In this document: piece after piece, positions 1 to 28,285 of the stretch
Layout of the letters: each line of letters begins with the position of its first letter
How positions within the stretch are numbered: position 1 is the first letter of the stretch
DNA from: Oopsacas minuta
Lineage: Eukaryota; Animalia; Porifera
Length of the DNA stretch: 64,000 nucleotides
NCBI GenBank assembly: GCA_024704765.1
Contig: JAKMXF010000003.1
Location: forward strand, 1-64,000
Direction of reading: 5' to 3'
Position numbers and translations under genes: made by a program
Notes under the pieces: generated by a model
Database searches by the model: none
What the model saw: the letters and a program-made list of their open reading frames with translations, nothing else
Told to the model about the DNA's origin: nothing

Positions 1-135
1 TATTAATCACAGATTTCCTATTTGAATGAGTAGAAATTGAATAAATATATACAAACAAACACAAATAAATAAATATTTACAAACACGAATATATAAACAC
101 GATAAACAAATAAACAAATATTCAAAATACTTTTA

Positions 136-798
136 CTATTTATGCCATTTAAGGACAAAACCTCCTAAATGCGAAACATCACGACTGACATAACACTTCG
201 CACCTTTCATTACTCCCTTTTTGTCTAATAATATTTCATATTCACTCACGCATGTATTATACAAAGGTCTATCTTCGTGTATAGTTATGGCGCCTAAATT
301 TGCTAGCAATCGTTCCATACAACTTATCGTAGCTCCGTGGGAAACTAAAAGTATATTTGGAATGTGTTTTTGTGATTCATCTAATTTCAATGGAATTTGA
401 CCGATTAAACTGGAACCAAGATCATGAAAAAAACTTGAAACTCTTTTCTCAACCGATTGGATCGACTCCTCATCGCTTGGACGGGGTCCTACACGCTCTT
501 CCTTCTTCTTACCCTCCCAACTTCCAAATCCTCGCTCTTTCAAGCGATCATCTAAAATTGGTTCTGTTTTATATTTCATATTTTCAAGCGCCAATTTGAT
601 TGTATGCAACGTACGTAGAAGAGGACTACAATAGATAAAATCGAATTTGTAATCGGTGAAACGAATACCAAGATGTTTAGACTGTGATATTCCTTCTTCG
701 TCAAGTTCTGTATCTATTTGTCCTTGTAAAATGTGGAGTTTGTTTTCTAGTGTTATCCCATGACGTGTTATGAATAATCTGATTTTAATATCAGCCAT
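136..798 (-). CDS. Histidine phosphatase superfamily protein, TIGAR/phosphoglycerate mutase-like
   Basis: Motifs ITRHG, SPLLRT, LKERGFG and VSHG supply the catalytic His/Arg/Glu/His set. ORF track starts at 852; MADIK at 798 is the more plausible start. Divergent from Ro60. Confidence 0.85.
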   Translation of the reverse strand: MADIKIRLFITRHGITLENKLHILQGQIDTELDEEGISQSKHLGIRFTDYKFDFIYCSPLLRTLHTIKLALENMKYKTEPILDDRLKERGFGSWEGKKKEERVGPRPSDEESIQSVEKRVSSFFHDLGSSLIGQIPLKLDESQKHIPNILLVSHGATISCMERLLANLGAITIHEDRPLYNTCVSEYEILLDKKGVMKGAKCYVSRDVSHLGGFVLKWHK

Positions 799-1436
799 CG
801 TAACTAAGAATAATTCGATTACGTATCTGCTGTTGACATTTCTCAAATTCACTAGACTTCCCTAAATATGATCACATCGGGACCCCCAGAGGCCCTATAG
901 ACACGATTATTCGTAGGAATTTGACGTTATTTGTAAGGTTCTGTTTCTGGTCAAGGGACCCGATTAATCGCTAGCTCTATTATGCGGGTCTATTGTGTGA
1001 ACTTTTTAGTATCAATAATTGGGAGGTCAGGAAACAAGTTGTCTGTATTGTAGGGATTAAAGGAAGGGGTTTGATAAGAAGTGAGTTAGTTATATGATTA
1101 AAGAAACAATAACAAGTTTGGGACTATTTCTGCCATAACTAAGTTGAGAATTTGTAATAAGTTCTATGAAGGTATACGCGTATAGACAAGGGTCATACTA
1201 GGAAATAATCTGGTTACAAATGACCAAAATACTGGAGAACACGTTGAAAACTAGTCTTCCGCCCCTGCCAGGGGGTCTATGAATGTGTGATAATTGCTAT
1301 AGACTATCCATGGGCTAAAAAGATTGACAAATATTCATAAATCAAACATATTTTGAATTTAGCTAAGTTATGAATGAATTGAGACATTTCTAGAAACCAT
1401 ATTATCCAAACTAGAAATTACATACTTTCTACATTC

Positions 1437-4400
1437 ATGGCTACTGCAACTGTTGCCATGGAAACGGAATCGCAAATCCCAATCCCACAGACAGTTGGAC
1501 TATCAGGTCAGATCCCAAACTCAGCTGGGGGGTATTCTTGGCCGATTAGCGATATGGGGAGACTGAGAAGGTTCTTGTGTCTCGGTTCAGAAGGAGGAAG
1601 TTATTATATCAACGAGAAGAAACTAGGTAATTCCAATCAATTCTCGTTAAATCTAATCTCAAGGGACCGTGATAATTCCTTCGATATAACCGATGAAATA
1701 TATGTATGTTACTCTAACGGTTTAGGAACATATTTGGACAGTTTAAGACTTCCTGTATTTCTATACATCATGTTCTATCTTTCTAATTATATATAATTAT
1801 AATTCTAGGAAAGGAGAATGCTAAAACAATAGTAAGAATGTTAGACACAGGAGAAGGTCAGGATGTTGTGATAGAGATTCTGCAGTATAGTACTGAAGGG
1901 AGAACTGCTAAGCAAGAGCCTATCATATTTGCACTTGCTATCTGCGCTAGATTAGGTAAATATGTTTGTTTGTTTGTTTGTTTATTTATCTATTCTCTCA
2001 CAATCCTTTAGGGGATGCAGAGACAAAGAAATCGGCCTACATAGCTCTCCCTAAAGTTTGTAGAATTCCAACTCATTTATTCAGTTTTATTGAATATTGT
2101 GAATCTCTCAGTAAAGGAACTGGATGGGGGAGAGCTCATAGAAGAGCAATATCTGAGTGGTAAGGTTATATTATAATCAATGCGACATCCACACCGAGGT
2201 GCAAGGGAGTCAGAAAATCTGCCCAATTCCACGTTTTTGTAGAGGCATTCGCTCTATTAATTTTCACTCCGTTTCCAGGAGTTCCTTGTTTCCACAGCCC
2301 CGTTCCCGTTTGTGTGTGTTACACTGTAATAATCATTACACTAATTACGAATTAGGTATACAGAGAAAGCTCCATATCCGCTCAGTATCTTAGTTACCAA
2401 ATATCAACAAAGGAATGGGTGGTCTCACAGAGATCTACTGAGACTTTGTCATCTTAAAACTGACAGAGATGAACTCAATATAATATTCAGGTATATATTA
2501 AGCCCTATACATATTTCACTGATAAATCACATTCCATTCCCGTATCCTAGATACATAATTAAAGGAATGGATCAAGTAATAACTGATTACGAACATTTGA
2601 CTTCAAACCCGGAAATATTAAAAGTATTTGAGTTCTTTCAAGCAGTTGAAAAAGCGAAGTCTTGTACGAAACCAGAAGATATTATCCCATTAATTAACAT
2701 TTATGGCCTGGTTCGTGAACACATTCCAACACCTTTGCTTAGCAACGCAGAAGTATGGCGAGCTCTACTCCAGAAAATGCCAATGACAGCTATGATCAGG
2801 AATCTGGGAAAGATGACAGCGATAGAATTATTAGCTCCTCTATCTGGTGAGTTAATTTCTCTCAATGGTTCTATTTTTAGAATTTTAATAATTAAATTAA
2901 TAAAAGTCAAGCAAACCTATTTGAATGGATCTCTACACCCAATCAGAAGCGGGGGATTTCACTAACATACTGTATGCACATAGACAATATAAATAGAAAA
3001 TAAAAATATAATAATTATTCTGAAATGTCAAGTTTGTCGAAGAAGAGAACTAAATCCGCTTACGAGCTGCAGAGAGAGAGGAATATTCGTAGGAACGAGG
3101 AGTTGTTGAGGAAGTTAGGAATTAATATTAGGGAAAAACAGAAGCCACTTCCTGTTATGAAAGATTCATCAGATTCTGAGACTGAGAGTGATCAGGATTG
3201 GAAACCGGAAGAGATAAAGAAAACAATAATAACAACAAAATTCGAACCACCTATGAGAAATACGTATGATCCTGATGAAGTGAAAAATGTTGTAGAAGAA
3301 TTTGAGAGAGAAGAAAACGAAAAACGAAAAGGAGTTAAACGAAAATCAAATTTCCCGAATAATAATATTCCCAAGAAACAGTTTGAAGGAACCACGAATA
3401 TATTCACTTTCGGGAAAGCGAAACTAAAATCTAAGGATTTTGACGCTGAAAAAGATAGTATCGATAATCTCCAAAATGTAGAATTTCGTTCAGATGAAGA
3501 AGTCCCAACAGATAGCAAAATTAGCTATGAGGAGTTTCTACAAAATCGTGAAGATGCCGAATTAATGGAACATGAGATTGCTTTAGTAGGAAGATATATC
3601 CGACAACAGCAATTAGATGAAAGGTTAGACTTACAAGATAATGATAAGCAAACCGATCTCTGTCATGAGAGAAGTAAGAGGCATTTGAGACATGTGGATT
3701 ATACCGAGGAGACATTAACAACAGAGGATAGCTATATCTATTGTGAGGAATGTGACGATTTGCATTTGGGTGATTGTCCAGTATTTGGAGAACTTTGTCC
3801 ATTAGATGAGTCCGCTATGATTATTAGTCCTCTATCCTCCATCCCTATTCCTAAGCAATTGATACTTAAGAACTCCTCAATTCCAAAGGCAGGTTTAGGA
3901 ATATTTGCAACAGAGACCATTGCAATACGTACTAGAATGGGCTCGTATGCTGGCACATTTGTAAGGGGATCTGTTGATAATTTACCGAATGAAAGTGAAT
4001 ATTTGTGGCAGATAAAACGAGGCAATGGGAAAGCTGTATGGTATATTGATGGAGAGGATTTGACCAGGGCGAATTGGATGAGATATGTGAATTGTGCTCG
4101 TCATGAGGATGAACAGAATTTGGTAGCGTTTCAGTTTAAAGGCAGAATATATTATAGAACTTATAAAGTTGTAAATCCTGGAGATGAACTTCTTGTATAC
4201 TACGGGGATCAATATGCCAAACACCTTGGCATAGGACAATTTGATAATATTGATATTAAGACGGTTGAAAACCCACCAATTGAGATGTCAACTGAAACGA
4301 GATTGTATAAACCTAACCGCAAAGACAAACCTTTTAAGTGTTCAGAATGTAATTGCTCTTATTCTAGCAGAATGACTTTGATTGCTCACTCACGTATACA

Positions 4401-7400
4401 CACAGGTGTTAATCTACACGAATGTGAAGTGTGTAATAAGGTATTCATTAGCAAGACAAAGCTAACTGTACACATACGTACACACACAGGAGAGAAACCA
4501 TTCAAATGTATCATATGTGATAAAAGGTTCAGCACAGATAGTAATCTTTCTGTACACATGCGTATACACACAGGAGAGAAACCATTCAAATGTACTATAT
4601 GTGATAAAAGGTTCTGCCAAGATAGCAATCTTTCTGTACACATGCATATACACACGGGAGAGAAACCATTCAAATGTACTATATGTGATAAAAGGTTCAG
4701 TAGTCCTGGAGAGCTCCCTATACACATACGTATACACACAGGAGAGAAGCCCTATGAATGTATATATTGTAAAAACAAATTTAATAACTCTTCTACTAGA
4801 AATAAACACCAAAAAATTCATAAAAACCAAACAAAATATAATAGTTAGATAAATTTGATTGAATTAAATAATATTATCACTTCTATTCTCTCTCAAATAG
4901 TCCTCACATAATACTAGTCACTAAATGTTTCTTCATTTTACTTATTTCCATATCTAGACGAGTCACAGCTGGTATGTAAGAAACTAAAGAACGAGTCAAT
5001 GCTAAAATCAGCTAAAATCCATCCATTCAACTTACTACTAGCACTCAAGGTATATAAAGCTGGTAAAGGAGATAAGGGCTCTCTATCATGGACACCTGTA
5101 CCTGCTATTGTATCTGCCTTAGACGCAGCTTTCTATCTATCTTTCAAGTTTGTTGAACCGACTGGAAAGAAGTTCTTACTAGCCCTTGACGTCAGTGGAT
5201 CAATGACATCTCCTGTGAGTTATGACCCGATTAAGCATACAGTAGACTCCACTTGGCCAGAAACAGAACCAAACAAAATAGTTATTCCTGCTTGTATTAA
5301 TCACATTGCATGTTATTAGATCCTTGGTACTCGTGTCGTCAGTTGTAGAGATGCCTCAGCCGCTATGGCAATGGTTACAATGAAGACTGAAGCTAATTTC
5401 CATGTTCTGGGGTTCTCTCATAAACTGGTAGATGTTCCTATCAAGTAAGTATTAAATCCTCCAAAAGTATTTTACCAAATTTCTGACGAATTTCATACAC
5501 TTGGACAGTGGACTCCGCTTGACTGGGTCACCGGTTAATTCATTGCCAGTTTTTACCTTCGTTTTATTGACACATTGTAAATTCATAGTGCTTCGATGGA
5601 TCTGAATACAGTAACTGAAACTATTAGTGCTATACCCATGGGAGCTACTGATTGCTCACTGCCATTTGAATGGGCACTGAAGAAGAAAGTGAATGTAGAT
5701 ATATTTATTGTGTACACAGATAATGAAACTTATTTCGGAGCTATACACCCGTTTGAAGTTTGTTTATTTCCAGTTTCTATATGTTGCGTATGTCGGTTAT
5801 AAGCACCATCCTCTGGAAAACAGTTCTCATATATTCCAGGATATTTATGCCGGTTATAAGAACAGGCATTGCTACTCACAAGGGTGTTCTTATAACTGAC
5901 ACGTCCACGGTAATCGAGATATTATTATTCGTCCGGAAATGATTGAAACCTGGTTTATACGATTTGGCTATAAGTAAGTTGATATTATTACAAATTCTCA
6001 GAGTAAATAGCATACCGAATTTCCAAATATTTATAAGGTTAACAAATTACTTAATATGATAAGCAAAGTACCCTGTTGTTATTGTTGTTATTGTTGTTAT
6101 TGTTGTTGGTGATGATTTCTAATAAAAAAAATATCATAAGTCTTACAGACATAATGTAAAGCTTATATTATACAAAATAGAGTTTAAGAAATAATAATAA
6201 ATATGAATTCGACAATTTGTCTTTGATTATTTGCTATTATCTCTCTACCAATAATATCGGTAATATACCTTGTGGCTTAGCATAATGCTTGTAAGTATTA
6301 GGTTTCTGGATAAATAGGAATAATTATTTGATTGTATTAATCCAGTGTTTATGAGTGAACATACATCTATTATCAGTAATATTGTAGAGTCTTATGACTC
6401 GATTATCTTCCGAGATTTCGAATCGTCCGTCTTTGGATGGATCAGAATCGGTCTGTCAACATCCGCGTTCATTCTTCTCTCATTCTCTCTTGTCCATATT
6501 CTATTTTTCTCTGCGATATACCGGAATAGGCTTAAGTCCCTTCAGAAACAATTCTACAACTCTCATCTTAAGAACTATTCCCGTATGTACCTATTCCTCG
6601 CAGTAATCCAATTCACCACAGCTATCTTCGAATTATCTGAACTAACTGGACATTCTATTATCAGCTCTAACCAGGAGATTTTCAACGAATTCACGTCTCA
6701 CAACGGTTGTATCATACATGAATACACTACCATGGCTGCTTTATCAAATTCTCATTTCTTCTTCCTTTTACCACCGATTACTCCAAACTTAATATTCCCG
6801 GTCTTATTAACTCTAATATACAGCTTCTTAATATTTACTGCTAGGATGTTTTCCCCGGATAACAAAAAACTGAAATCGTATTTGTATCGATTACACGTGT
6901 TAGTGTGGACTACTGTACAAGTATCGCTTCTCCTAATCCTCTACTCAAATCATTGGACGCTAATCGTTGCCCCCTTGTTCTTCGCTATATTCGTTATAAT
7001 CGATTTTTCTATGTTCGTTATCTACGCAGTTTCCCTTAAGAAAATTCTCCATAATACCTGTAAGGACGTCATGTGCTATACAGACAATACAAGAGACATA
7101 TCACAGATAATTAACTTCTACAATTTGTATAAGAGGTGTATAATATTTCTCGTTATTTCTCTCTTACTTCTTTCCCTATCCCTGGTCCTAACAGCCATAT
7201 TTGACGGTGTTAGAAGCTTCCTATTGAATGATTGTTTCTATAAGATAGATAAACTGGATAATGCGCACTATGAAACAGATCATATCTTGGGTAAAGTGGT
7301 AGTAATATCAATTATAATGTTGAAGTTCTCATCCATGGTTATTTTTGATTTATTTGTGGGTGCTTCTAGCGTAATTATTTGCGTTAAAGTTGTGGTATTC

Positions 7401-16230: not shown

Positions 16231-19200
16231 ATGAGTGACCAAAAGAGAAATTCAGCGATCTGCTTATCAGGGCTAGAAGACGCAATAGATATTCTCTTAC
16301 AACAGAATCTTCATAGGAATATTCACACCACCTGTTGTATTATTAGCCTCCTACAGGAATACATTACATATCTACTACCAATCATTGATGTTGATATAAC
16401 CGATCAAGATAGAATTACCCCAGATACCAATACGGCCATTAGGATTGTATTAGAATTAGATAGAGGAGAACATTCCGGAGTGTTGCTAGGTTACATGGAA
16501 GCGGAAGTAGAGAATAGAGTGTTTATTGAGCAAATAGCGATTGGTAGTAAAGCTGAAGAGTTTGAAGAAATTGAAATTGATCATATCATTTTAGGTATAT
16601 ACGAATATTCATACTAACCATCTACGTTACTTCCCGCCATGATACACCCGAAAATATACAGAAATATAGCAAAATATCAGAATCCCCGGGATATTTGGGT
16701 ATCGCTTATAAGAACATGCCGGATATAATTACCATCCACTGACAACCTTTCTCATATATTCCTGTCTATTATACCCGGTATAAGGACATGTATTGTTACT
16801 CACAAGGGTGTTCTTATAACCGGCATTTCCTGTATTCTATAGAGATAAACTCCCATCCTTTGAGTCGCTGCTCGCTAGAGAGAGCACAGGTCTGGCTTGA
16901 GAGCGCTGAGAGAGGAGGGAAACTAGAAATGTTGTTATCTCGTAGTATAAGTATAGAGAGAGAGATTGCAAGGGGCCGTGTATACAGAGCTATTGATAAG
17001 TTATCTTTGAGATTATCTGAAGCAGCTGTGAGACGAGCTAGTGGTTAGTCCACTAATATTAATACAAATGAACTTCCATAAACGAGGAATTCGATAGGAA
17101 AAGCATATTTCGGAATATGTGACCAACTCAGAATATTCCAATTTTGCTATAATTAAGTGTATCATATTAGGTGTGAACGACCTAGAGGCATTGTCCCGTG
17201 TAGTCAGAACTCTAGCTATACAAAGACATGACCCCTCAGATGCTAATAGAAATGTATTAGATAGGGAAAATACGCTACACATCATGAAGGGGAGAGATGA
17301 TATAGGAATTATCCTGTCAAATAATGGAGGTAAGAGATGGAGACAACTGTGTTAAGACAACAAACAACTTGTTGTTATTTACAATTATCCACAGGTAATG
17401 ATCATGTTTATAAGATAGAATCTATCGCAGAACGGTCAGCAGCTAACAGAGATGGGAGATTACAGACAGGAGATGTTATTCTTAAAGTAAATGGGGTAAC
17501 ACTTGCTGGACTAACAAATCATGACGTTATGGAACTATTAAATGTGAATAGATCCTATATCCAGATAGTGTTAGATAATAAACTTGTGGCTGATAGTAGT
17601 AATGATGTTTCAAATACGAACTCTGTGATTATAGTAGAAGAGAATATTGAAAAGAGATCGATTGAGAATGAAAACAGTGAGTATTGTATGCCACAATTGA
17701 TTGTGACTCAACCACTTTGCATTGCCACATCTCGAAAACTATAAATCTGATTTGTATACTCAAAATTGCAAAATTGTTGTTCAGAGTTCCATCTTCCCCA
17801 AAAGATTTTTTCTTGGGACAATTTGACTTCGAATTTATAGCTAATGCCTTTAGGTGTCAAACAACATGATACCATTTCACCACACAAACCTCCTATACCT
17901 GATACCAACTGGTCTGGTGATCATTTAATTAGAGAGAGTTCCCTTGAGTACCCTACATGGTCCAGATTGTCCCAGCGGTCTTACTCTAGTGAGAACTCAT
18001 TTATTGGAACCAGAAATTCACCAATGAGATCTTCTTTCCAAGTACTTAATTGATAATTGTGTTTGTTTGTTTGTTTGTTTGTTTATTATATTCATATACA
18101 CTAGGTCAGACACGTAGCACTATCTCGTAGCGAAAGCAAGCCCTTAGGATTCACTATAGCAGGAGGTAAAGGTTCAAGGAAAGGAGATATAGGAATATTT
18201 GTAGGTCATATCCATGACAACGGTGCTGCCTCACAGGAAGGCACTATGAAGGTTTGGAATTGGAATTAATTACTATAATTAAAATAATTGGTTCCAATTT
18301 AGATAGGAGATGAGATATTGGAGGTAAATGGAATGTCTTTAGAAGGAATGTCACAGAGAAAAGCCCTACAAACATTCAAGAAACTCAAGCAAGGATTAGT
18401 TACAATTAAACTGAAATCAAGATCATTACAACCGGAACTATCAGCTAATTTTGTGCTACAAAATGTTATATTGAATAAAACAGCTGATGCGGGTTTGGGA
18501 CTTGAATTAATCGTCCTTATTGATGCTCGAGGAGGATACCTTGATGGTATTTATGTACAGGTAACAAGTTTCACATATATTACGTCACTGTTTGTTGGGA
18601 AATTGTTTCAGCTCCCCTGCCAGGAGCGAGGTTACCTGTCGCAGTGATTTAATCTTCACAGACCTCTTTTAACGCGCTTAATTAACATATTTAGAAGTAG
18701 AGTTATTGAATTTTCCATGAATTGGACACTTTGTATTTTGATAAAGTCATAACATAATGAGAAACCACAGATAGACATCATGTGTAGCTGAAACAAGTTC
18801 CTCATTAACAGGCCCTTTTCTGTGTTTATTAGTTGTTATTAATAGAATGTAAGAGAAGGTTCAGTAGCCTTCCAAGACGGATCTCTAAAGAGAGGTGATC
18901 AGTTATTAACTATCAACGGAGACCCTTTAATGAGTACAAACCTCCGACGGGCTCATGCTATTATCGGCACATTAACACCTGGAGAGGTAGATATAGGTAT
19001 ACGGAGGTACTCTCCTGTAGAACCATTAGAGAGACTTCTCACACTAACTAAGAGGCAGAATAGATTGCAGCCAATACCGAGTCAACAGAGCATGAGGTAA
19101 ACACCCATACACTCAACTCCAGTTATATCTAAGCTCAAGGGACCGTGATAATTTTCTCCCTAATGTAATTAATAGACTCGAGCCCAGATCACCAAGTTAC

Positions 19201-22200
19201 CAAGCTGATGCTAGCTCAATATTTCTACAAGAAATTACTCAATTAAGCTCAGATGCTAGTGACAATGATGACGCAATGGAATCTGATTTAACTAAACTTA
19301 TAGCTGGTATAGAGAGGGCGAATTCTTTCACTAGAGGGGCACATGGCTCTGAAACAGCTCTCCGGATGAGTAGAGAGGAACTAGAGGGTACAAATATAGA
19401 TGCATTGTTCTCTCCAATTGATACCCACCCGATAAAAGAGGAACAATTGGTATGCAGGTTACTATTTCTTGGATTCTTATTAAAAAAAAAGCACACTCAA
19501 TGAACTACAGTCAACTTCCATTATATCTAAGCTCAAGGGACCCCGATAATTCATTCGATATAACGCGAGTTGACTGTATTATCATATAATCTAATTATAG
19601 GCAGGATCAGACTCCGAGGAGACTATGAGTGACGTATTTACAGAACCTCTAATCTTGTCTAAACCTAAACTATTACATGAGAACAGTAGTAAGAGAGATC
19701 TAGAAAGGTTAGAGATAGCTAGAAATGGTTATAGCAGTGATATTGTAACAGAGATTGTTACACTACATAGAAGTATGGGACAAACTTTAGGTAAGAATTG
19801 TATAGACCCCCTTGTTGATCCACTGTATCTCATATTTCATGAATATCTGTGTGTGTGTGTGTGTATAGGAATGAACGTTATTGCATCTAGTACACCACAA
19901 CTAGGCGTACTAGTCACAAGTATCCTCAAAGACGGACCTGCAGCTAAGCAAGCGCGTATCAGAGTTGGAGATGAACTGTTAGAAATAAACAACACCTCAC
20001 TAATTGGATTAACTCAATCTAAAGTGTTGAGTTTGTTATCTTCTCTAACAGGGGAAATGAATTTTAAAGTAATCCGTACTCCAGACAAGATTGATATAGC
20101 AAAGGATGATGTTAGAGAGGAAATAGGGAGCAGTGAGACTAGGAAATTGGACCAGGTGAGAAATGTGCCTATTTCATGGTTACTACAGCCAATCCCGTCA
20201 TATCGAAGTGTAAAATTGTACAAATATGGTCCCAAACCGTCAAACTAACATATTCCATCAGTTATACCGAAGTAATTATCGTTGGTCCTTTGAGCTTCGA
20301 TATAACAGGAGTTAACTGTATGGATTATGCTCAGCTGTCGATAGACTTCATGTGAGTAGCGGAGAAGGATTTAATTGGGGGTATACAAGTAGATTTTTGC
20401 ATTTTCGGACATCGGAGGTACTCATTGTTTCGGTGCATATTATCTGACTATAATTATTTTATCAGGTTACAAGTTCCTTTCCAGGATATGACATGCTAGA
20501 ACTTACATTCTCAAGACACACTTCAGAGACCTTAGGCATAACCTTATCTCCCAGTAAGGGACAAACAGAGGGGTATCTACAAATTAGAAGGGTCTTAGTA
20601 GAAGGACTAGCTCACAGAGACGGTAGACTTAAGAAATTTGACAGACTCTACGCGTTGGATAGTGCTCCTTTGTATAAACGTCCAAGTGTTGAGGTTATGA
20701 GGATGTTGAGACAAACAGACAATGTATTCACTTTGATAATACTGAGGGAAGTTATTAGACGTCTGGCGAATAGTGAGACCTCTCTCACTGCCAGTTCTAT
20801 ATCTGTTGCATCTCAAGGTGTGTATATATGTATGTATTATAGTAATATACATACACCAATACTGTATCCATTAGGTTTGAAGAAAGGTATGCTATTAAAG
20901 ACACACAAATACGCTGGGTCCTTTGAAGATTCTTTGAAAGACATCCGATCTAACGATCCTATAACTTCAGTGCATGTAGCTACAAAGCTTGTTACTGATA
21001 TTAAACCTAGCATGGATGGTATATCTGGGTATAATTCAGAATTTACCAATATTACTCCTGCTAGCAGTGAGGACTATATCGATAATAGAGGAGACAGACA
21101 GGTTGTTAGTAGTCCTGTAGATGATTAATTAGTGGATCAGGGGCCAATTGGGTCACTTGGCCAGAACTGAAGTGTTAAATGCCCACTGGTAATCCTGTCA
21201 ACTCCCATTATATCTAACACGGATATATAGAAATACCCGCTATACCGAAGTGTGAAATTGTACAAAGATGGTCCCAAACTGTCAAAGTAACATATAATCC
21301 ATCGGTTATATCGGAGTAATTATCACGGTCCCTTGAGCTTAGATATAACAGGAGTTAACTGTAGGCCCCTTTTGTCATACGCATAACGAGATTTCTCACT
21401 CCTATTCATACTTAATGAGTCTCCTATAGGATCAGGAAGAAGTGATATCAACAAATCAACAATCAGTCTCAGACAACAAACTGAAAGGGTTTAACCCGAA
21501 AAGAGTTCTATTTCGGAAAAGACATTTAGTTAAAACTTCAAATCTGACCGAGAGTATTGACGCGCCGCCCCACGACGCCCGAGTGGCTGAGGAGAGGAGA
21601 ACCTCATTCGTACAGCAGACTTCTTCCATGTCTGTAACCGGTGAACTCCCACGACAGCTGGTATTCACAGGATCACACTTAGAAAAACAATCAGAAAATC
21701 GTGAAATTATTCAAACGAAAAATATTAAAAAGATAAAATTCAGGAAAATGTTTAAGATTATAGAAATAAAACTCTCCGAAGTGAAGGACGGTCAGGTATC
21801 TGTCAGTTTCGTGGCGACGAGTAGCCCCTTAAGGAGGACAACGCCCCCTTTAGAAATAGGGGATGTTCTTATAAATATAAACGGCACGCCGGTCACTTCG
21901 AAAAAACAGGCAGAAAAATTGTTATATTCTCTAGAAAAGGGAGAACATACTCTGGAAGTTATCTCAGAAAGTTCGAAAGAAATTCCTCAAATTGTTTTGA
22001 AAGAGGAACATCAAGAAAATACAGAGGTAAACAAAAACAATCTACAAACACAAGAGAATGAACCTTCTAACAATCAATATGAGTTGGAACTTATTGCGAA
22101 GAATAAACAAGAACTATTCGGTTTAGAATTTGGAGATGATAACCAAGCGAAAAGAATTTGTATCACCTCGATAAGCCCCCTGTTCCCTGGGGCAGATTCT

Positions 22201-25200
22201 AGGATCCAAATCGGTGACCAGCTCATATCAATCGACGGAAAATCGTTTGTTGGAATTTCACTCAAAGATGGAAATAAAATATACGAAAATCTCCCAATAA
22301 ATCAACCAGTCCTATTTATACTCCAGCGTACAGGGACAACAACAAATCAGATTGCATACCCTAAGCATACTTCTATGGTTCGTAATCTCTTGCTGAAAGA
22401 CCGAATATTAGAAGTGGAACTAGATAGAGGAGGCGAAAATAAATTAGGTGTTGTGTTGTCCGGCGGGTCTGAAACCAATGAAAAGAGAGTTTATATTAGG
22501 AGGATAGGTCCTGGGTCTATCGTAGCAACCGATGGAAGGCTAAAGGTATGTGTAATTCCATCATATTTGTTGTCTTAAGTTGTTTACTTGTTTATTTAGA
22601 TAAGTGACGAGTTGATTTCTGTTAATGGGATATCGTTAGAAGGTTTGACACACAAAGATGCTCTTTTGGTTATTAAGAATGCAGGAAATGTGCTGAATTT
22701 CAAAGTTTTTAGAAGAAAAGATATTAGAACAATTCCTTCTAGTAAGTTGAGTTTCAATTGGCCCCTTAAGGTGTCAAAACCTCACCCCAAGGGTGTGTTA
22801 AGGGGTCTTTAATTATTGTCTGTTTTAGATAAAACAGTCCCAAGTAGTCCCTCTGTCCTATTCAGAGGATCTAAGAGGTTCATAAACCTAGAGGAGTCAA
22901 CTGATTCTCAAGGAACATTGGACAGTTTGTTAAAGAGGAACAAGCTCACCTCTACACAAGGATTGAGGTAATTAAATTATATATTGAATTACACATAGCT
23001 ATCTTCCATAATGGTAACTATGCAACTGGTAGGTTTCCATCATTAAGTTAGTGAGTCATTAACCAAAGGTAAATCATCCTAACAACGAGATTGTGCAAGA
23101 GTTATGCATGTTTCTCATATGTGTGAGGGCCCCCCCTCCCCCCAATTAATAAATAAACAAATAAAACATGATTAATCACAAGAATAGCAGATTAATTAAT
23201 AATAAACAAACACTATTTCCCATGCTTATATTCTTTAACCAGTTTTGCCAGTGCATCAACTCCCTCGTACAAACCGTCTCCTGTTGTAGCCGATGTCGCT
23301 TGTATGTACCAGTTGTGTCCTTTCAAGGTCTCAAGGCCCAATTCCCGCACGAGATTGGCCGGGTTCTCCGCTCCTGGGAGGTCCTGTTTGTTCGCGAATA
23401 CGACCACAGGAACGCCGGCCATTTCGCCGTCACTTAGTATAGAGTGTAGTTCATTCTTCGCCTCGGGTAGTCGCTCTTTATCTGCTGAATCTACAATGAA
23501 TATGAGACCGTCTGTACCGTTGAAATAGTGTCTCCAGAGTGGCCTGATCTTATCTTGTCCTCCCACGTCCCAGACTGTAAACGATACATTCTTAACCGGG
23601 GCAACTGTCTCCACGTTGAATCCAATCGTCGGAATAGACTGCACAGTCTCGTTGAGCTTGAACTTGTAAAGAATTGTAGTTTTCCCTGCAGCGTCTAGCC
23701 CCAACATCAAAATCCTCGCTTGAGTTGTCCCAAAACTTGAAAGCGATTGCATAATTTTACTCAAAAACAGACCCATTTTCCTAATTCTTATTATAAAACA
23801 GAAAGCTCTGTGTATTTATAGCAATAGAATTGTATATAGGATGTATGTATACACGTTTTACTGGTGATGTGGCAGTATTAAGACTACTATAGGGGCTTCG
23901 AATTACATACGTATTGGGTTTCAACGTAATATGTAGTGATATTGCTCTGCCACGTTTCTGTAAATTACAAGTCTTGAAATCTAAAATTAGACAATTTTTG
24001 TGTATAAAATAAGCGAAAATGAATTCAAAAATATCAGAAATAAATCGACACAAAAATGGGAATCTTTTCTTCAAAAATTGCTTCACTTTTGGACTCAATT
24101 TCTAAGATGGGGACGACACAAGCTCGGGTCCTTATGCTCGGTCTGGACGCCGCGGGTAAGACCACAATCCTATACAAATACAAACTAAGTGAACAAGTCA
24201 CGACTGTTCCAACAATCGGGTTCAACGTGGAAACGGTTTCGCCAGTTAAGAATGTATCTTTCACGGTCTGGGATATCGGGGGACAAGCAACCATCCGCCA
24301 ATTATGGAGGTATTACTATCAAGGAACAGACGGACTCATTTTTATCGTGGACTCGACAGACCGTGAGCGATTTGCGTCCGCGAAAGAGGAACTTTTGAGC
24401 ATACTCGACGATCAAGACATGCACAGTGTACCAGTGGTCGTATTTGCTAACAAACAAGACCTCCCTGGAGCAGAGGAACCATCCAAATTAGCGACAGAAC
24501 TAGGGCTAGATAGTCTAAGAGGGCATGATTGGTACATACAGGGGACTTCCGCTAATTCAGGACAGGGGCTATATGAGGGCATGGAACAGCTTGTCAGGTT
24601 AATTAAGGAAAATAGGAAACATAATTAAGTGTTTTTTGTTTGTTTATGAAGTAAATATATTCATTAAAGCATGATATAATAATAAACATTCCAAATGCCA
24701 ATGGGGTAACTATGGAAACTGGAACATAACTCAGAAGGACAGGGAATTGGTGAATGTCTAGGATGCTATCATTCATGCTATGGAGTACAAATCTAAGCTG
24801 AAGGGACCGTAATAATTCCTTCGATCTAACTGATAGAATATTTGTTACTTAAACGGTTTGTGACCATATTTGTACAATTTCACACTTCGAAATAAAGGGA
24901 TATATCGATATTTTATATAACGAGGGTTGTCCCCGGCCAAGGGTGCTAAAATACAACCTCAAGGAGGTAAGTATCTAATTCCTACTTCGAAGTTATAAAC
25001 TAATTTGTCAGTCAGAAACTTCTTTAAATGTGATATACTCGTATGGTAATTCAATAGGCTTATTAGTATCTTATTAAGGAATAATTTTTCAAAAGTTTAG
25101 GCCTAAAAATGGAAGAAAATAATTCGATTTATTTGCAGAGACTCTGCGCGTCGGTTAAACAGGTGCAAATAGAAGCCAGTCAGACAAATGAGTTTTTAGT

Positions 25201-28200
25201 TAGGGACGGCAGGACGCCGTTACAATTATGTGGCAGATATGAGGACATCTTCTGTCACCGTTACAGATCGTCCGCGCTGTCACTCTTGAGAAAGAAGTCA
25301 GGATTTTGGGGGGTCGTTAAGGAGATCAGTCGAAAGGAAGCGCTAACGAGGATTAAGAACCTCCAACACCCCGAGACCGATTTGGGGCGGTGTCGAGCTT
25401 GGATTCGCCTCGCTGCGAACGAGAACTCACTCGTAGCTTATATAATGTCTCTCCTTTCAAACCCTGAGTTCTTAGCTAAGTATTATGAACCACAAGCATT
25501 TCTCAGAGATAGTGATTTGACCGAAGCAGCCATGAACGTGTTGAGTGGGTTAGATACGATTAGATTTGAACTGACAATCGATACTTCCAGTTTAGAAGTT
25601 GAAATAGCACCGGACGCATATATTCCCGCGGATAAATTATCCCGGATGATGGCGCTCGAATTAGCGCGGGCTGTACAACAAATCCCAACGGAACCGGTAC
25701 TCATAGAACGACGGCCATTGAGGAAGAAACGCAGGAAAAATAAGAAATTCAATTCCCAGAGTACGGACACTGATTCCCCAGAGATGCCAGATAGTGAGTC
25801 CGACTATGGTAGCATGAGACCTCCGGCTACCAATCCCCTCGCTGTAGACACTCCTCCTAAAGATGGGAGAGGTCAGCTACCGTGGTATTCATCCTCATTT
25901 GAGCATTCACACGGTGCTCTGTTCACAGATTCGAGTCTCATGCGTTCTTCTCCGAATTCTGAGATGAAAGGGATTACTTTATCGACCTCCGCCCCGCCCA
26001 CAAGGGCCGTGTTCCCTAAACAGTTTATTTCAGAGAGGAAAGAGACCCCGTCTCCGATTTCTCCGAGTTTGGAGCAGATCGAAGAAATTTCCGAAGTTCC
26101 TAGCTCTGAAGTAAAATCCAAACCCTTCGATCTGTTATCTCCCATCCTCGCTTCTCCCAACACAGACCCAATAACTACACTAATATGTGATGAAGCCAAT
26201 GGCGCTAGTTCTTTAGATATTATCACACCTCAAAATATGGAGTCATTTCCATTTATAGAAGATCAAATAGAAGATATCACAATCCTCAAATCGAAAATGA
26301 AACTAGATTTAGAAAATCCACAAAACGAAAATGAATCCGAATCGATTCCTGAGAAATCTTTCAAATCGATAGATCTTAGTCCTCCACAACTGAAACTTGA
26401 ACTGGAACTAGCCAAATCACCTCCAGTATACAAAGATTTCCCCTCACCTTACAAACCTATGTCTACATATTCTCACCCAATACAGACATTCCTTACTGCC
26501 GATGCTGTTGATAACCAAACATCAAACCGCAATGGAACGCCGAACTCATTTTCAGCGAACTCCCATTCTTCGAGTGACGATTTTTTCTCAATTAACGGCG
26601 AATGGGACGTAATTCGGATGGAGGACACGGATGTGCCAGTCGAGACACTCGACACTATACCATTTCAAAGTAAATTCACCGATGATTATTTTATGCAAGA
26701 AATCAATGTAGACAAATTAACACAAAATCAGCTGTATAGCACAATGAAACGAATAAGAGAAGAATTGAAAAATGTAACCAAAGATCACCCAAGTCATAAA
26801 ATACTTGTCCACACATTGGTGAAGCTGAGGATTCGTCGCTTAGAGATGGCGGAAGGTGTGGCACAATTGAAACCACGTGAAGAGAAGTGTTTGAGGATAT
26901 CTGGCCACATTTTAGAAGTACATTCAGGCGGTAAAAATCCACCAAAATTGTGTGAGATATGTGGGAAGCATTTCAATCCGGTAAACATCACAAAACAAAA
27001 ATGGTGTCTCTGTCGAGAGTGTAAATTAACCCTTCATGTCTCTTGTGTCAAGAGGATCCCATCAATCTGTCCAACTCAGGCCAATCCCCAACTTATCCTC
27101 CAAAACAGTCCAGAATTGGGGCTGTTGGCGCAGAAATTTAAATGTCATAACTGTTCACGGCAAATAGGTCTTGGGGGCAAAGAAGAGCCCAGATTGTGTC
27201 GGTATACCGGTATATACTTCTGTCAAAATTGTTACTCAATCACCCCAGCTACTTTACCCGCTAAAATTGTCCACGATTGGGACTTCAGGGTTCGTGGAGT
27301 GTCACTGTCCTCATATTTGTGCCTCAAAGTACTTCACAGTTCTCCTTGTATCAATCTAACAATCGAAAATCCGTTGATATATTCATATGAAAATACGTTA
27401 AGCGAATGCTCGATAATTCGCGATAAGTTAAAACAGATTTATTTATTCTTAAACGTGTGTCAAAACGCAAAGCAGCTGGGACTGCTAGCTGTACACCAGG
27501 GCATCCTTCATGACCATATATGGATTGACAAAGAGCCTTGGTCGATAGCAGACTTATTTAATGTCAAAGAGGGCCTGTTCTTACCCACTTTAAAGGAGTT
27601 ATTCTCAAAATGGGATTCACATATTCGCCAATGCGCCAGATGTTCTGGGAACGGTCATTATTGTCTGGGATGCCATTCGGAAGATATCATCTTCCCGTGG
27701 GATATATTAGCGATTAGTTGTGAGACCTGTGGTACGTTGTATCATTCACATTGTACCACTGAAAGTGGCTGTAGTAGATGTGCCTTACGTGCTAAACGTA
27801 TGCAAAATGTTACAAACTAGGTGTTGGTATGTGTATGTATATATACGTATATGGAATTGTTATTAATGGACACTTTGTTTACTTTTTAGTATTTTAATAT
27901 GATCTAATATTTAAGTGTCGCATAGTACGAATTTAATAAACATTCTGTGGCAAGACAAATTACTCGGGGTATATGTATATATTGTCACCTTTTGTTATTA
28001 GATTATTTGTGGCAATATTTGTTCTGTTTTAGATACTTTGAGCTCGTGAAAGGACCAACTGGTTTGGGATTATCTTTGAAAGGTGGGAGAGATGAAAAGA
28101 CACCAATTATTGTGAAGAATATGCATCCACAGGGCAATGCATTCCTGTCCGGTCTTATTGAAGTTGGAGACGAGATAGTCGAGATTAATTCTAAATCATT

Positions 28201-28285
28201 TGCGGATATAAATGCGAAAGAGGGAATTGAGTTTTTGAAGGATTTACCAATTGGTCCTGTCCGTTTTCTCATCAAAAAGAAATGA
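16231..28285 (+). CDS. Multi-PDZ protein (about 10 PDZ domains), pro-IL-16/PDZD2-like, intron-rich
   Basis: PDZ domains are split over exons, e.g. [40 protein letters not shown] (IL16/PDZD2 type), [16 protein letters not shown], and terminal [22 protein letters not shown]. Exon 1 is 16231-16594; the last intron 22968-28032 joins AG|A TAC TTT in frame. Confidence 0.8.
16700..16834. mobile_element. MITE family B copy
   Basis: ttataagaac..ttactcacaagggtgttcttataaccggcatttcctgta; TA-ended TIR. Confidence 0.75.
18588..18811. mobile_element. MITE family D copy 1
   Basis: gttgggaaattgtttcagctc ... agctgaaacaagttcctcattaacag; colinear with 29117-29349. Confidence 0.75.
19108..19155 (+). mobile_element. 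MITE family A 5-prime fragment
   Basis: tacactcaactccagttatatctaagctcaagggaccgtgataatt. Confidence 0.7.
19506..19578. mobile_element. MITE family A, 73-bp minimal copy with both TIRs (Tc1/mariner-pogo-like, TA-flanked)
   Basis: tacagtcaacttccattatatc ... gatataacgcgagttgactgta; core aagctcaagggacc is shared with other copies. Confidence 0.85.
20184..20320 (-). mobile_element. MITE family A copy
   Basis: Ends gatataacaggagttaactgta; internal ggtcctttgagctt and tgtacaaatatggtcccaaaccgtcaa. Confidence 0.8.
21194..21363 (-). mobile_element. MITE family A near full-length copy
   Basis: gtcaactcccattatatc ... ggtcccttgagcttagatataacaggagttaactgta. Confidence 0.85.
23213..23776 (-). CDS. ARF-family small GTPase, intronless, nested
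   Basis: N-terminal [38 protein letters not shown]. Confidence 0.95.
24056..24628 (+). CDS. ARF-family small GTPase paralogue, intronless, nested
   Basis: N-terminal [28 protein letters not shown]; about 70% identical to the head-to-head neighbour over the core (hand count). Confidence 0.95.
24791..24931 (+). mobile_element. MITE family A copy between ARF and the RUN/RH gene
   Basis: aagctgaagggaccgtaataattccttcgatc..acggtttgtgaccatatttgtacaatttcacacttcg; approximate limits. Confidence 0.7.
25109..27820 (+). CDS. RUN domain + C1 + Rubicon-homology domain protein (PLEKHM1/DEF8 family), intronless, nested
   Basis: RUN motif [26 protein letters not shown]; C1 H..C..C..C..C..H..C; RH domain [42 protein letters not shown]. 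Confidence 0.88.
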   Translation: MEENNSIYLQRLCASVKQVQIEASQTNEFLVRDGRTPLQLCGRYEDIFCHRYRSSALSLLRKKSGFWGVVKEISRKEALTRIKNLQHPETDLGRCRAWIRLAANENSLVAYIMSLLSNPEFLAKYYEPQAFLRDSDLTEAAMNVLSGLDTIRFELTIDTSSLEVEIAPDAYIPADKLSRMMALELARAVQQIPTEPVLIERRPLRKKRRKNKKFNSQSTDTDSPEMPDSESDYGSMRPPATNPLAVDTPPKDGRGQLPWYSSSFEHSHGALFTDSSLMRSSPNSEMKGITLSTSAPPTRAVFPKQFISERKETPSPISPSLEQIEEISEVPSSEVKSKPFDLLSPILASPNTDPITTLICDEANGASSLDIITPQNMESFPFIEDQIEDITILKSKMKLDLENPQNENESESIPEKSFKSIDLSPPQLKLELELAKSPPVYKDFPSPYKPMSTYSHPIQTFLTADAVDNQTSNRNGTPNSFSANSHSSSDDFFSINGEWDVIRMEDTDVPVETLDTIPFQSKFTDDYFMQEINVDKLTQNQLYSTMKRIREELKNVTKDHPSHKILVHTLVKLRIRRLEMAEGVAQLKPREEKCLRISGHILEVHSGGKNPPKLCEICGKHFNPVNITKQKWCLCRECKLTLHVSCVKRIPSICPTQANPQLILQNSPELGLLAQKFKCHNCSRQIGLGGKEEPRLCRYTGIYFCQNCYSITPATLPAKIVHDWDFRVRGVSLSSYLCLKVLHSSPCINLTIENPLIYSYENTLSECSIIRDKLKQIYLFLNVCQNAKQLGLLAVHQGILHDHIWIDKEPWSIADLFNVKEGLFLPTLKELFSKWDSHIRQCARCSGNGHYCLGCHSEDIIFPWDILAISCETCGTLYHSHCTTESGCSRCALRAKRMQNVTN

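Follow-up and report, generated by a model that had tools for sequence, protein, structure and literature searches.

The 64,000-base stretch analyzed here (the window) comprises bases 1–64000 of GenBank record JAKMXF010000003.1 from the glass sponge Oopsacas minuta, and window coordinates are identical to record coordinates. It carries on its forward strand a multi-PDZ gene whose last PDZ domain is encoded by a separate terminal exon, spliced over a 5-kb intron that itself holds three genes. The linker that precedes this last PDZ contains a short motif, ESTD/S (here and below a slash within a motif marks a cut or an exon boundary), which resembles the caspase site of human pro-interleukin-16 (pro-IL-16). 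The explanation that best fits the data, and which is considered probable, is that the gene encodes a glass-sponge scaffold protein of the PDZD2/pro-IL-16 family, spliced in this manner, and that the likeness of ESTD/S to the human site is coincidental or convergent. A preliminary description of the locus had proposed a pro-IL-16-like protein with a caspase-type site positioned to release a single C-terminal PDZ. The observation behind that proposal is confirmed and the interpretation is supported in part: the gene model and the family hold, but the homology of the site does not.

According to this explanation, the gene has 14 exons and the protein about 1500–1600 residues with 9–10 PDZ domains. 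The last of these comes from the separate terminal exon, reached over the 5-kb intron with its two Arf GTPase genes and one RUN/Rubicon-homology gene, and the spliced mRNA encodes a multi-PDZ protein ending in a PDZD2-type PDZ. Judging from its family, the product would be a cytoplasmic scaffold that binds the C-terminal tails of partner proteins via its PDZ domains.

Exons 1–13 of the multi-PDZ (PDZD2/IL-16-like) gene are at positions 16231–22967 (+), as determined from open reading frames (ORFs), Pfam PDZ matches and a splice-aware draft model. Together with the terminal exon the draft model has 14 exons, and it translates to approximately 1489 residues with 9–10 PDZ domains. It differs from the 1526-residue NCBI model and probably retains one or two short introns (e.g., at residues ~610–625 and ~845–860), and the domain positions are approximate. 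The second half of the penultimate PDZ is encoded by an exon at 22600–22741 (+), which is present in an RNA-like contig described below. The penultimate exon, at 22829–22967 (+), encodes a 46-residue linker and is defined by its translation, by an alignment of seven genomes and by RNA joints on both sides. An acceptor, ttttag, is directly before position 22829, and the donor AG/gtaa is at 22967/22968. The last intron (22968–28032, +) is 5065 nt, has GT..AG ends and is in phase 2. A second ttttag acceptor is directly before 28033, and the AG of the penultimate exon plus the A of the next form an Arg codon across the splice. The terminal exon (28033–28285, +) consists of one complete PDZ (Pfam PF00595, E = 2e-12) and the stop codon TGA at 28283–28285.

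The presence of three intact intronless genes inside the proposed 5065-nt intron made the join doubtful, and it was therefore tested by RNA and comparative evidence. Four public runs of one sample cover the stretch. Three are DNA-like, in that their depth is flat and their contigs are contiguous. The fourth run (X4) was taken as RNA-like on the basis of GT..AG joints and of a depth over the Arf genes that is about 100 times that of the neighboring sequence; the type of this run is not on record. One X4 contig shows 22598–22741 joined to 22829–22967 and ends exactly at 22967. A second X4 contig joins 22967 to 28033 (reported as 22965/28031, with a 2-base ambiguity, and with GT..AG ends). The loose contig end at 22598 corresponds to the place where the upstream exon stops (22545), i.e., a 22545/22600 junction. 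The 22741/22829 and 22967/28033 joints together with this loose end therefore place three consecutive junctions of the model in RNA-like contigs.

The same junction is found in related glass sponges. The penultimate exon ends in AG/GT in all six related genomes in which both exons were found, and in these six the terminal exon follows tttttag and starts with RTAYTTTGA. The splice phase and the Arg codon are thus unchanged, and the equivalent last intron is 4.9–9.2 kb in the six genomes. The terminal PDZ is 70–87% identical in seven related assemblies, and the stop codon is 0–4 residues past the last PDZ strand in eight of eight genomes. The splice of the linker exon to the terminal PDZ exon is thus real and is conserved across related genomes. 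The in-frame join of 22829–22967 to 28033–28285, which was proposed in the preliminary description, is borne out by the X4 joint and by the phase conserved in the six relatives, and the terminal exon belongs to this gene. The Asp codon at 22903–22905, the 104 residues that follow the Asp and all other coordinates given there are also correct.

Two public gene models are wrong at this locus, one being a truncated multi-PDZ gene and the other a chimeric RUN-PDZ gene. In the NCBI annotation (GCA_024704765.1), the model at 16231–22971 (1526 residues) terminates the multi-PDZ gene at a TAA overlapping the donor. The model LOD99_9669 (P0001, 990 residues) connects the RUN gene with the PDZ exon via a predicted intron, and the resulting fusion translates the polypyrimidine tract of the true acceptor as protein, between ..RAK and RYFEL... 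The gene model first read from this stretch was right, against the public annotation.

The relationship of the terminal PDZ was analyzed with a profile made from eight sponge sequences, which was searched against 1.84 billion representative proteins. The default ranking sums scores over repeats and puts 13-PDZ MPDZ-like proteins first; the 150 matches were therefore re-ranked by best single domain. Directly after the sponge sequences themselves and those of two relatives come proteins that match by their very last PDZ, and such matches make up about 30 of the best 40. The top non-sponge matches score 41–52 bits, cover the whole profile and stop 5 residues short of the C-terminus. They are named PDZ domain-containing protein 2 or Pro-interleukin-16 at source and come from a marsupial, birds, reptiles, an amphibian, fishes and the starfish Acanthaster, followed by amphioxus and an annelid relative. 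MPDZ-like and PTPN13 controls match by internal domains only, at lower scores.

Other domains of the protein point in the same direction. For PDZ A and PDZ B, 15–17 of the top 20 matches are from the PDZD2/IL-16 family, and PDZ B scores 66–70 bits against the PDZD2 PDZ at ~520–680. The B+C tandem scores 104–108 bits against PDZD2, vs. 72–74 bits against MPDZ-like proteins. In a domain tree, for which the N-terminal PDZ comparison set was limited to about 200 proteins, PDZ A, B and C are nearest to successive domains of Monodelphis and Ambystoma PDZD2 (~309–398, ~563–655 and ~706–796) and also to IL-16 domains 1 and 2. When all terminal PDZs are held together, in a constrained-clade test run after the sponge orthologues were added, the tree is 5.5 log-likelihood units above the free tree, with a p value of 0.6 in the approximately unbiased test (p-AU). 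The constrained terminal clade is thus not rejected and has the better likelihood; the free tree does not resolve the terminal PDZ. The protein is probably a divergent member of the PDZD2/IL-16 family with extra PDZ domains, to judge from these matches. The term "pro-IL-16-like" is appropriate in the sense of family membership, by way of the terminal PDZ and PDZ A–C, but not in the sense of an inherited caspase site. The PDZ that precedes the linker had also been described as specifically IL-16-like; its best matches are PTPN13-like and other proteins.

The motif E-S-T-D-S is at positions 22894–22908 (+), as read from the sequence, in a linker that by composition is Ser/Thr/Lys-rich and is located between two PDZ domains. 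In human pro-IL-16 the cut follows the tetrapeptide SSTD (SSTD/S). The linkers of seven hexactinellid genomes, i.e., the window and the related loci L001–L003 and L006–L008, were aligned. After an N-L-E segment the window reads E-STD/S and L002 reads STD/S (equivalent to ESTD/S); the corresponding residues are ECTD/K in L001, DYTD/K in L006 and TAD/T in L008 (equivalent to ETAD/T). L003 has D/TTQGE (NLED), and L007 has EYSASNQG with no Asp. The motif [ED]x[TA]D is therefore present in five of the seven genomes, shifted in L003 and absent in L007. Two of the five (L001 and L006) have Lys at P1', a residue that is disfavored at this position by mammalian caspases. An Asp at P1 with a small P1' residue is found in the window and L002 (ESTD/S) and in L008 (ETAD/T).

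The patch that contains the motif is the least conserved part of the linker exon; it is acidic and rich in insertions and deletions. Fifteen other linker columns are invariant, within the segments SPS, R, NLE and L.RNKL.S..GL. The mean column identity of the linker is 69%, about the same as the five of seven for the Asp, and the site is not conserved above the linker background. The frequency of such motifs was also considered. The draft protein of 1489 residues has five occurrences of the pattern [DE]xxD[GSA], and at a background of ~0.0018 per residue in neighboring proteins there is an ~8–15% chance of finding one in a 46-residue linker. By these counts, the ESTD/S motif alone is not beyond chance. 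As a separate observation, the invariant blocks of the linker (window 22837–22965) have no Pfam match and are better conserved than many PDZ positions, and they are without counterpart in PDZD2/IL-16 of other animals.

Outside the glass sponges, the coelacanth pro-IL-16 has VSTD/C, and the 120 residues that follow its Asp agree with human IL-16, where caspase-3 cuts at Asp510 of the 631-residue precursor to give a 121-residue single-PDZ product (PMC11788625). No equivalent motif is present in three teleost pro-IL-16 proteins, at that position in PDZD2 proteins, in Acanthaster, or in the two nearest non-hexactinellid relatives examined (P0088 and P0128). In the genome that carries the P0128 cluster, a single ORF encodes the last two PDZs and the linker is unrelated. 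The occurrence of STD in coelacanth IL-16 but not in the three teleosts shows that the motif is unstable even within vertebrates. These comparisons make it very unlikely that the sponge and human STD have a common origin, and the likeness of ESTD/S to the human IL-16 site is most likely a coincidence or convergence and not inheritance. The proposal of an inherited IL-16-like caspase site is not supported: the Asp is found in five of seven linkers, flanking segments such as RFINLE are far better conserved, and STD/S itself is variable in hexactinellids and absent in P0088, P0128 and teleost IL-16. ESTD/S is nevertheless plausible as a putative protease site, and a lineage-specific working site in hexactinellids would be conceivable.

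Several points weigh against the explanation offered here. The 22967/28033 joint is represented by one contig, with a shorter side of 28 letters, from the run of unrecorded type. The free PDZ tree is without a clade of terminal PDZs, and resolution is weak in PDZ trees built from ~90 columns. No specific PDZD2 counterpart was found for PDZ D–H, and the terminal PDZ, which ends in ..LIKKK, has neither the H[FY][DE]AWN helix B signature of the family nor the -TxV tail. When PDB chains were searched with the terminal PDZ, both by itself and in the form of a profile, DLG4, PATJ, MAGI and GOPC ranked above IL-16, whose C-terminal PDZ was at about the 50th place with 27–29 bits. This low rank was read as a limit of the PDB content and of summed scores, because the library-wide search gave PDZD2. 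With respect to the motif, the five of seven genomes that keep acidic-x-[TA]-D include L008, whose nested RUN protein is only ~56% identical to that of the window, so that a real constraint is possible. The weakness of the free tree, in which the terminal PDZs are ungrouped, would also suit a generic scaffold or one of the MPDZ/PATJ/PTPN13 type, whose likeness to PDZD2/IL-16 would be noise among PDZ repeats. The top whole-protein matches are indeed 13-PDZ MPDZ-like proteins, the best match of PDZ H is a PTPN13-like protein, PDZ D–G have no PDZD2 counterpart, and the H+I tandem scores equally against MPDZ-like proteins and PDZD2. However, whole-protein scores merely sum repeats, while about 30 of the best 40 single-domain matches are C-terminal PDZs of PDZD2/IL-16, and PDZ A, B and C follow the order of the PDZD2 domains they match, A and B with most of their top matches from the family. 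In addition, no Pfam family matched residues 1–121 of the draft protein at E values up to 10, so there is no L27 domain at the N-terminus. A generic or MPDZ-type origin is therefore unlikely, judged from domain matches, and identity with MPDZ/PATJ in particular was rejected from the missing L27 and the domain-level matches to PDZD2/IL-16.

The public annotation offers a different explanation, in which the RUN/Rubicon-homology gene LOD99_9669 ends with the PDZ exon. In its favor, the NCBI model P0001 joins the two, which share a strand and are separated by 213 bases. But the junction of that model reads through the polypyrimidine tract of the true acceptor, the RUN ORF is closed by a stop codon of its own, and seven of seven orthologues are without a PDZ. 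X4 has an unspliced contig over 27732–28055 with no joint there, and it does have the 22967/28033 joint. This explanation is scarcely credible. More weight can be given to the possibility that ESTD/S is a working caspase site, that a 104-residue single-PDZ signal similar to IL-16 would be released by it, and that such release would be an ancestral trait of the family. The motif is 23 residues before the PDZ in the Ser/Thr/Lys-rich linker, the [ED]x[TA]D form recurs in most of the hexactinellids with an identical ESTD/S in L002, the coelacanth has a comparable VSTD/C, and the protein belongs to a family with members that are caspase-processed near their C-terminal PDZs, i.e., human IL-16 at Asp510 (PMC11788625), the crab EsIL-16 (PMC8326423) and, reportedly, PDZD2. 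Against this, the Asp is lost in L007 and displaced in L003, L001 and L006 have Lys at P1', conservation of the Asp is no better than the linker mean, with 15 other columns invariant, and teleost IL-16, PDZD2, Acanthaster and the nearest non-hexactinellid relatives are without the motif. The known cut positions in the family also differ, in that PDZD2 and the crab protein release two PDZs. This possibility is unlikely, as is cleavage of the linker by sponge caspases on present evidence. The more specific proposal that the PDZD2/IL-16 homologue of glass sponges is cut after the Asp of [ED]x[TA]D, with release of a single-PDZ signaling peptide, is quite improbable; if true, caspase-released PDZ mediators would go back to the base of animals and not just to arthropods and vertebrates.

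As a PDZD2/pro-IL-16-family scaffold, the sponge protein can be compared with several known systems. PDZD2 (PAPIN/AIPC) of vertebrates and other deuterostomes is also a multi-PDZ protein with a PDZ at the extreme C-terminus. It provides the best single-domain match to the terminal PDZ, and it has the counterparts of PDZ A, B and C in the same order. The sponge protein differs in being shorter (~1500–1600 vs. ~2700 residues), in having more PDZs (9–10 vs. 6), and in the absence of the H[FY][DE]AWN signature and the -T-x-V tail. PDZD2 reportedly yields a secreted two-PDZ peptide, going by the title of a 2003 paper by Yeung et al. that is listed as a reference in PMC6448123, in contrast to the single PDZ proposed for the sponge. 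Vertebrate pro-IL-16, a paralogue of PDZD2, is of the same family and likewise has a C-terminal PDZ preceded by a linker. STD is 120 residues from the end in the coelacanth protein vs. 104 in the sponge, whose PDZ is not followed by a C-terminal tail, and the C-terminal PDZ of IL-16 reaches only the 27–29 bits given above against the sponge PDZ. CD4 is not known from sponges. MPDZ and PATJ share with the sponge protein the PDZ arrays, a last PDZ near the C-terminus and high summed scores, but the sponge protein is without an N-terminal L27, and single-domain matches and domain order favor PDZD2/IL-16.

The closest functional comparison is with EsIL-16 of the crab Eriocheir sinensis, where it was shown experimentally that caspase-3 cuts the protein, that the C-terminal fragment is secreted and that it acts without CD4 (PMC8326423). 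The fragment is ~34 kDa with two PDZs and binds integrin beta-1 through a non-PDZ part (PMC8326423). The crab and sponge proteins are both invertebrate family members with C-terminal PDZs; cleavage and a two-PDZ fragment are established by experiment in the crab, and the fragment proposed for the sponge would hold one PDZ. The concept of a caspase-released cytokine that predates CD4 has therefore been published already for crustaceans (PMC8326423), so the evolutionary idea attached to the sponge locus is partly pre-empted, and its extension to a caspase-released IL-16-like peptide in this sponge is not supported. What is new is a sponge member of a known family and the correction of the annotation, which concerns two public Oopsacas minuta gene models. 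In a 2021 paper IL-16-like genes were described as unknown in invertebrates other than arthropods (PMC8326423), and literature searches found no paper that connects PDZD2 or IL-16 with sponges. The present gene places the PDZD2/pro-IL-16 family in Porifera; the origin of the family therefore moves to early animals.

The three genes nested in the last intron are all intronless. An Arf-family GTPase gene is at 23213–23776 (-) (Pfam Arf, E = 1.6e-67) and a second is at 24056–24628 (+) (Pfam Arf, E = 8.6e-65), both with very high X4 depth and arranged head-to-head. The NCBI models for these genes (164 and 173 residues) are shorter than the ORFs (187 and 190 residues). Exact-protein look-ups of both Arf ORFs gave no match because the NCBI models use other starts. 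The third gene, at 25109–27820 (+), encodes a 903-residue protein with RUN, C1 and Rubicon-homology domains (Pfam RUN, C1_1 and RH_dom), and this ORF is 100% identical to the NCBI protein LOD99_9669. Seven orthologues of the RUN protein were found in ENA assemblies, with 55–68% identity and lengths of 890–988 residues. The gene order of PDZ exons, Arf(-), Arf(+), RUN/RH, PDZ exon and BBS2 is present in six of six relatives with loci that include 10 kb of sequence ahead of the RUN gene (L001–L003 and L006–L008). A seventh assembly is represented by two short contigs (L004 and L005), which show the RUN gene and then the PDZ exon only. L008 carries a third Arf gene. In L010, a relative at a greater distance, a single ORF contains the last two PDZs and there are no nested genes. 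Between the Arf(+) and RUN genes, positions 24853–24895 of the window have a depth 10–20 times that of the surroundings in the DNA-like runs; the high depth and the many contig ends there indicate a dispersed repeat.

In one X4 contig, the acceptor of the terminal PDZ exon (28031–28033) is immediately preceded by 18 letters of foreign sequence, TCTTCATAAAAAACTTAC. A search of the window showed that TCTTCATAAAAAACTTAC is absent from it, and when read in the PDZ frame it contains a stop codon. It may represent a spliced leader added at an internal acceptor, e.g., of read-through transcripts of the RUN gene; the leader sequence is not given in the text of the Aphrocallistes genome paper.

An additional intronless gene, which encodes a PRDM/SET and zinc-finger protein, is located upstream of the multi-PDZ gene in Oopsacas (window 3025–4848). 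In the relatives it is found among or beside the multi-PDZ exons: at 2368–4146 (-) in L001, 1174–2982 (-) in L002, 3242–4852 (-) in L006, 338–2020 (-) in L007 and 1–1616 (-) in L008. The L003 copy (4343–6214, +) is on the other strand and inside the last intron. The PRDM/SET and zinc-finger gene thus seems to have moved.

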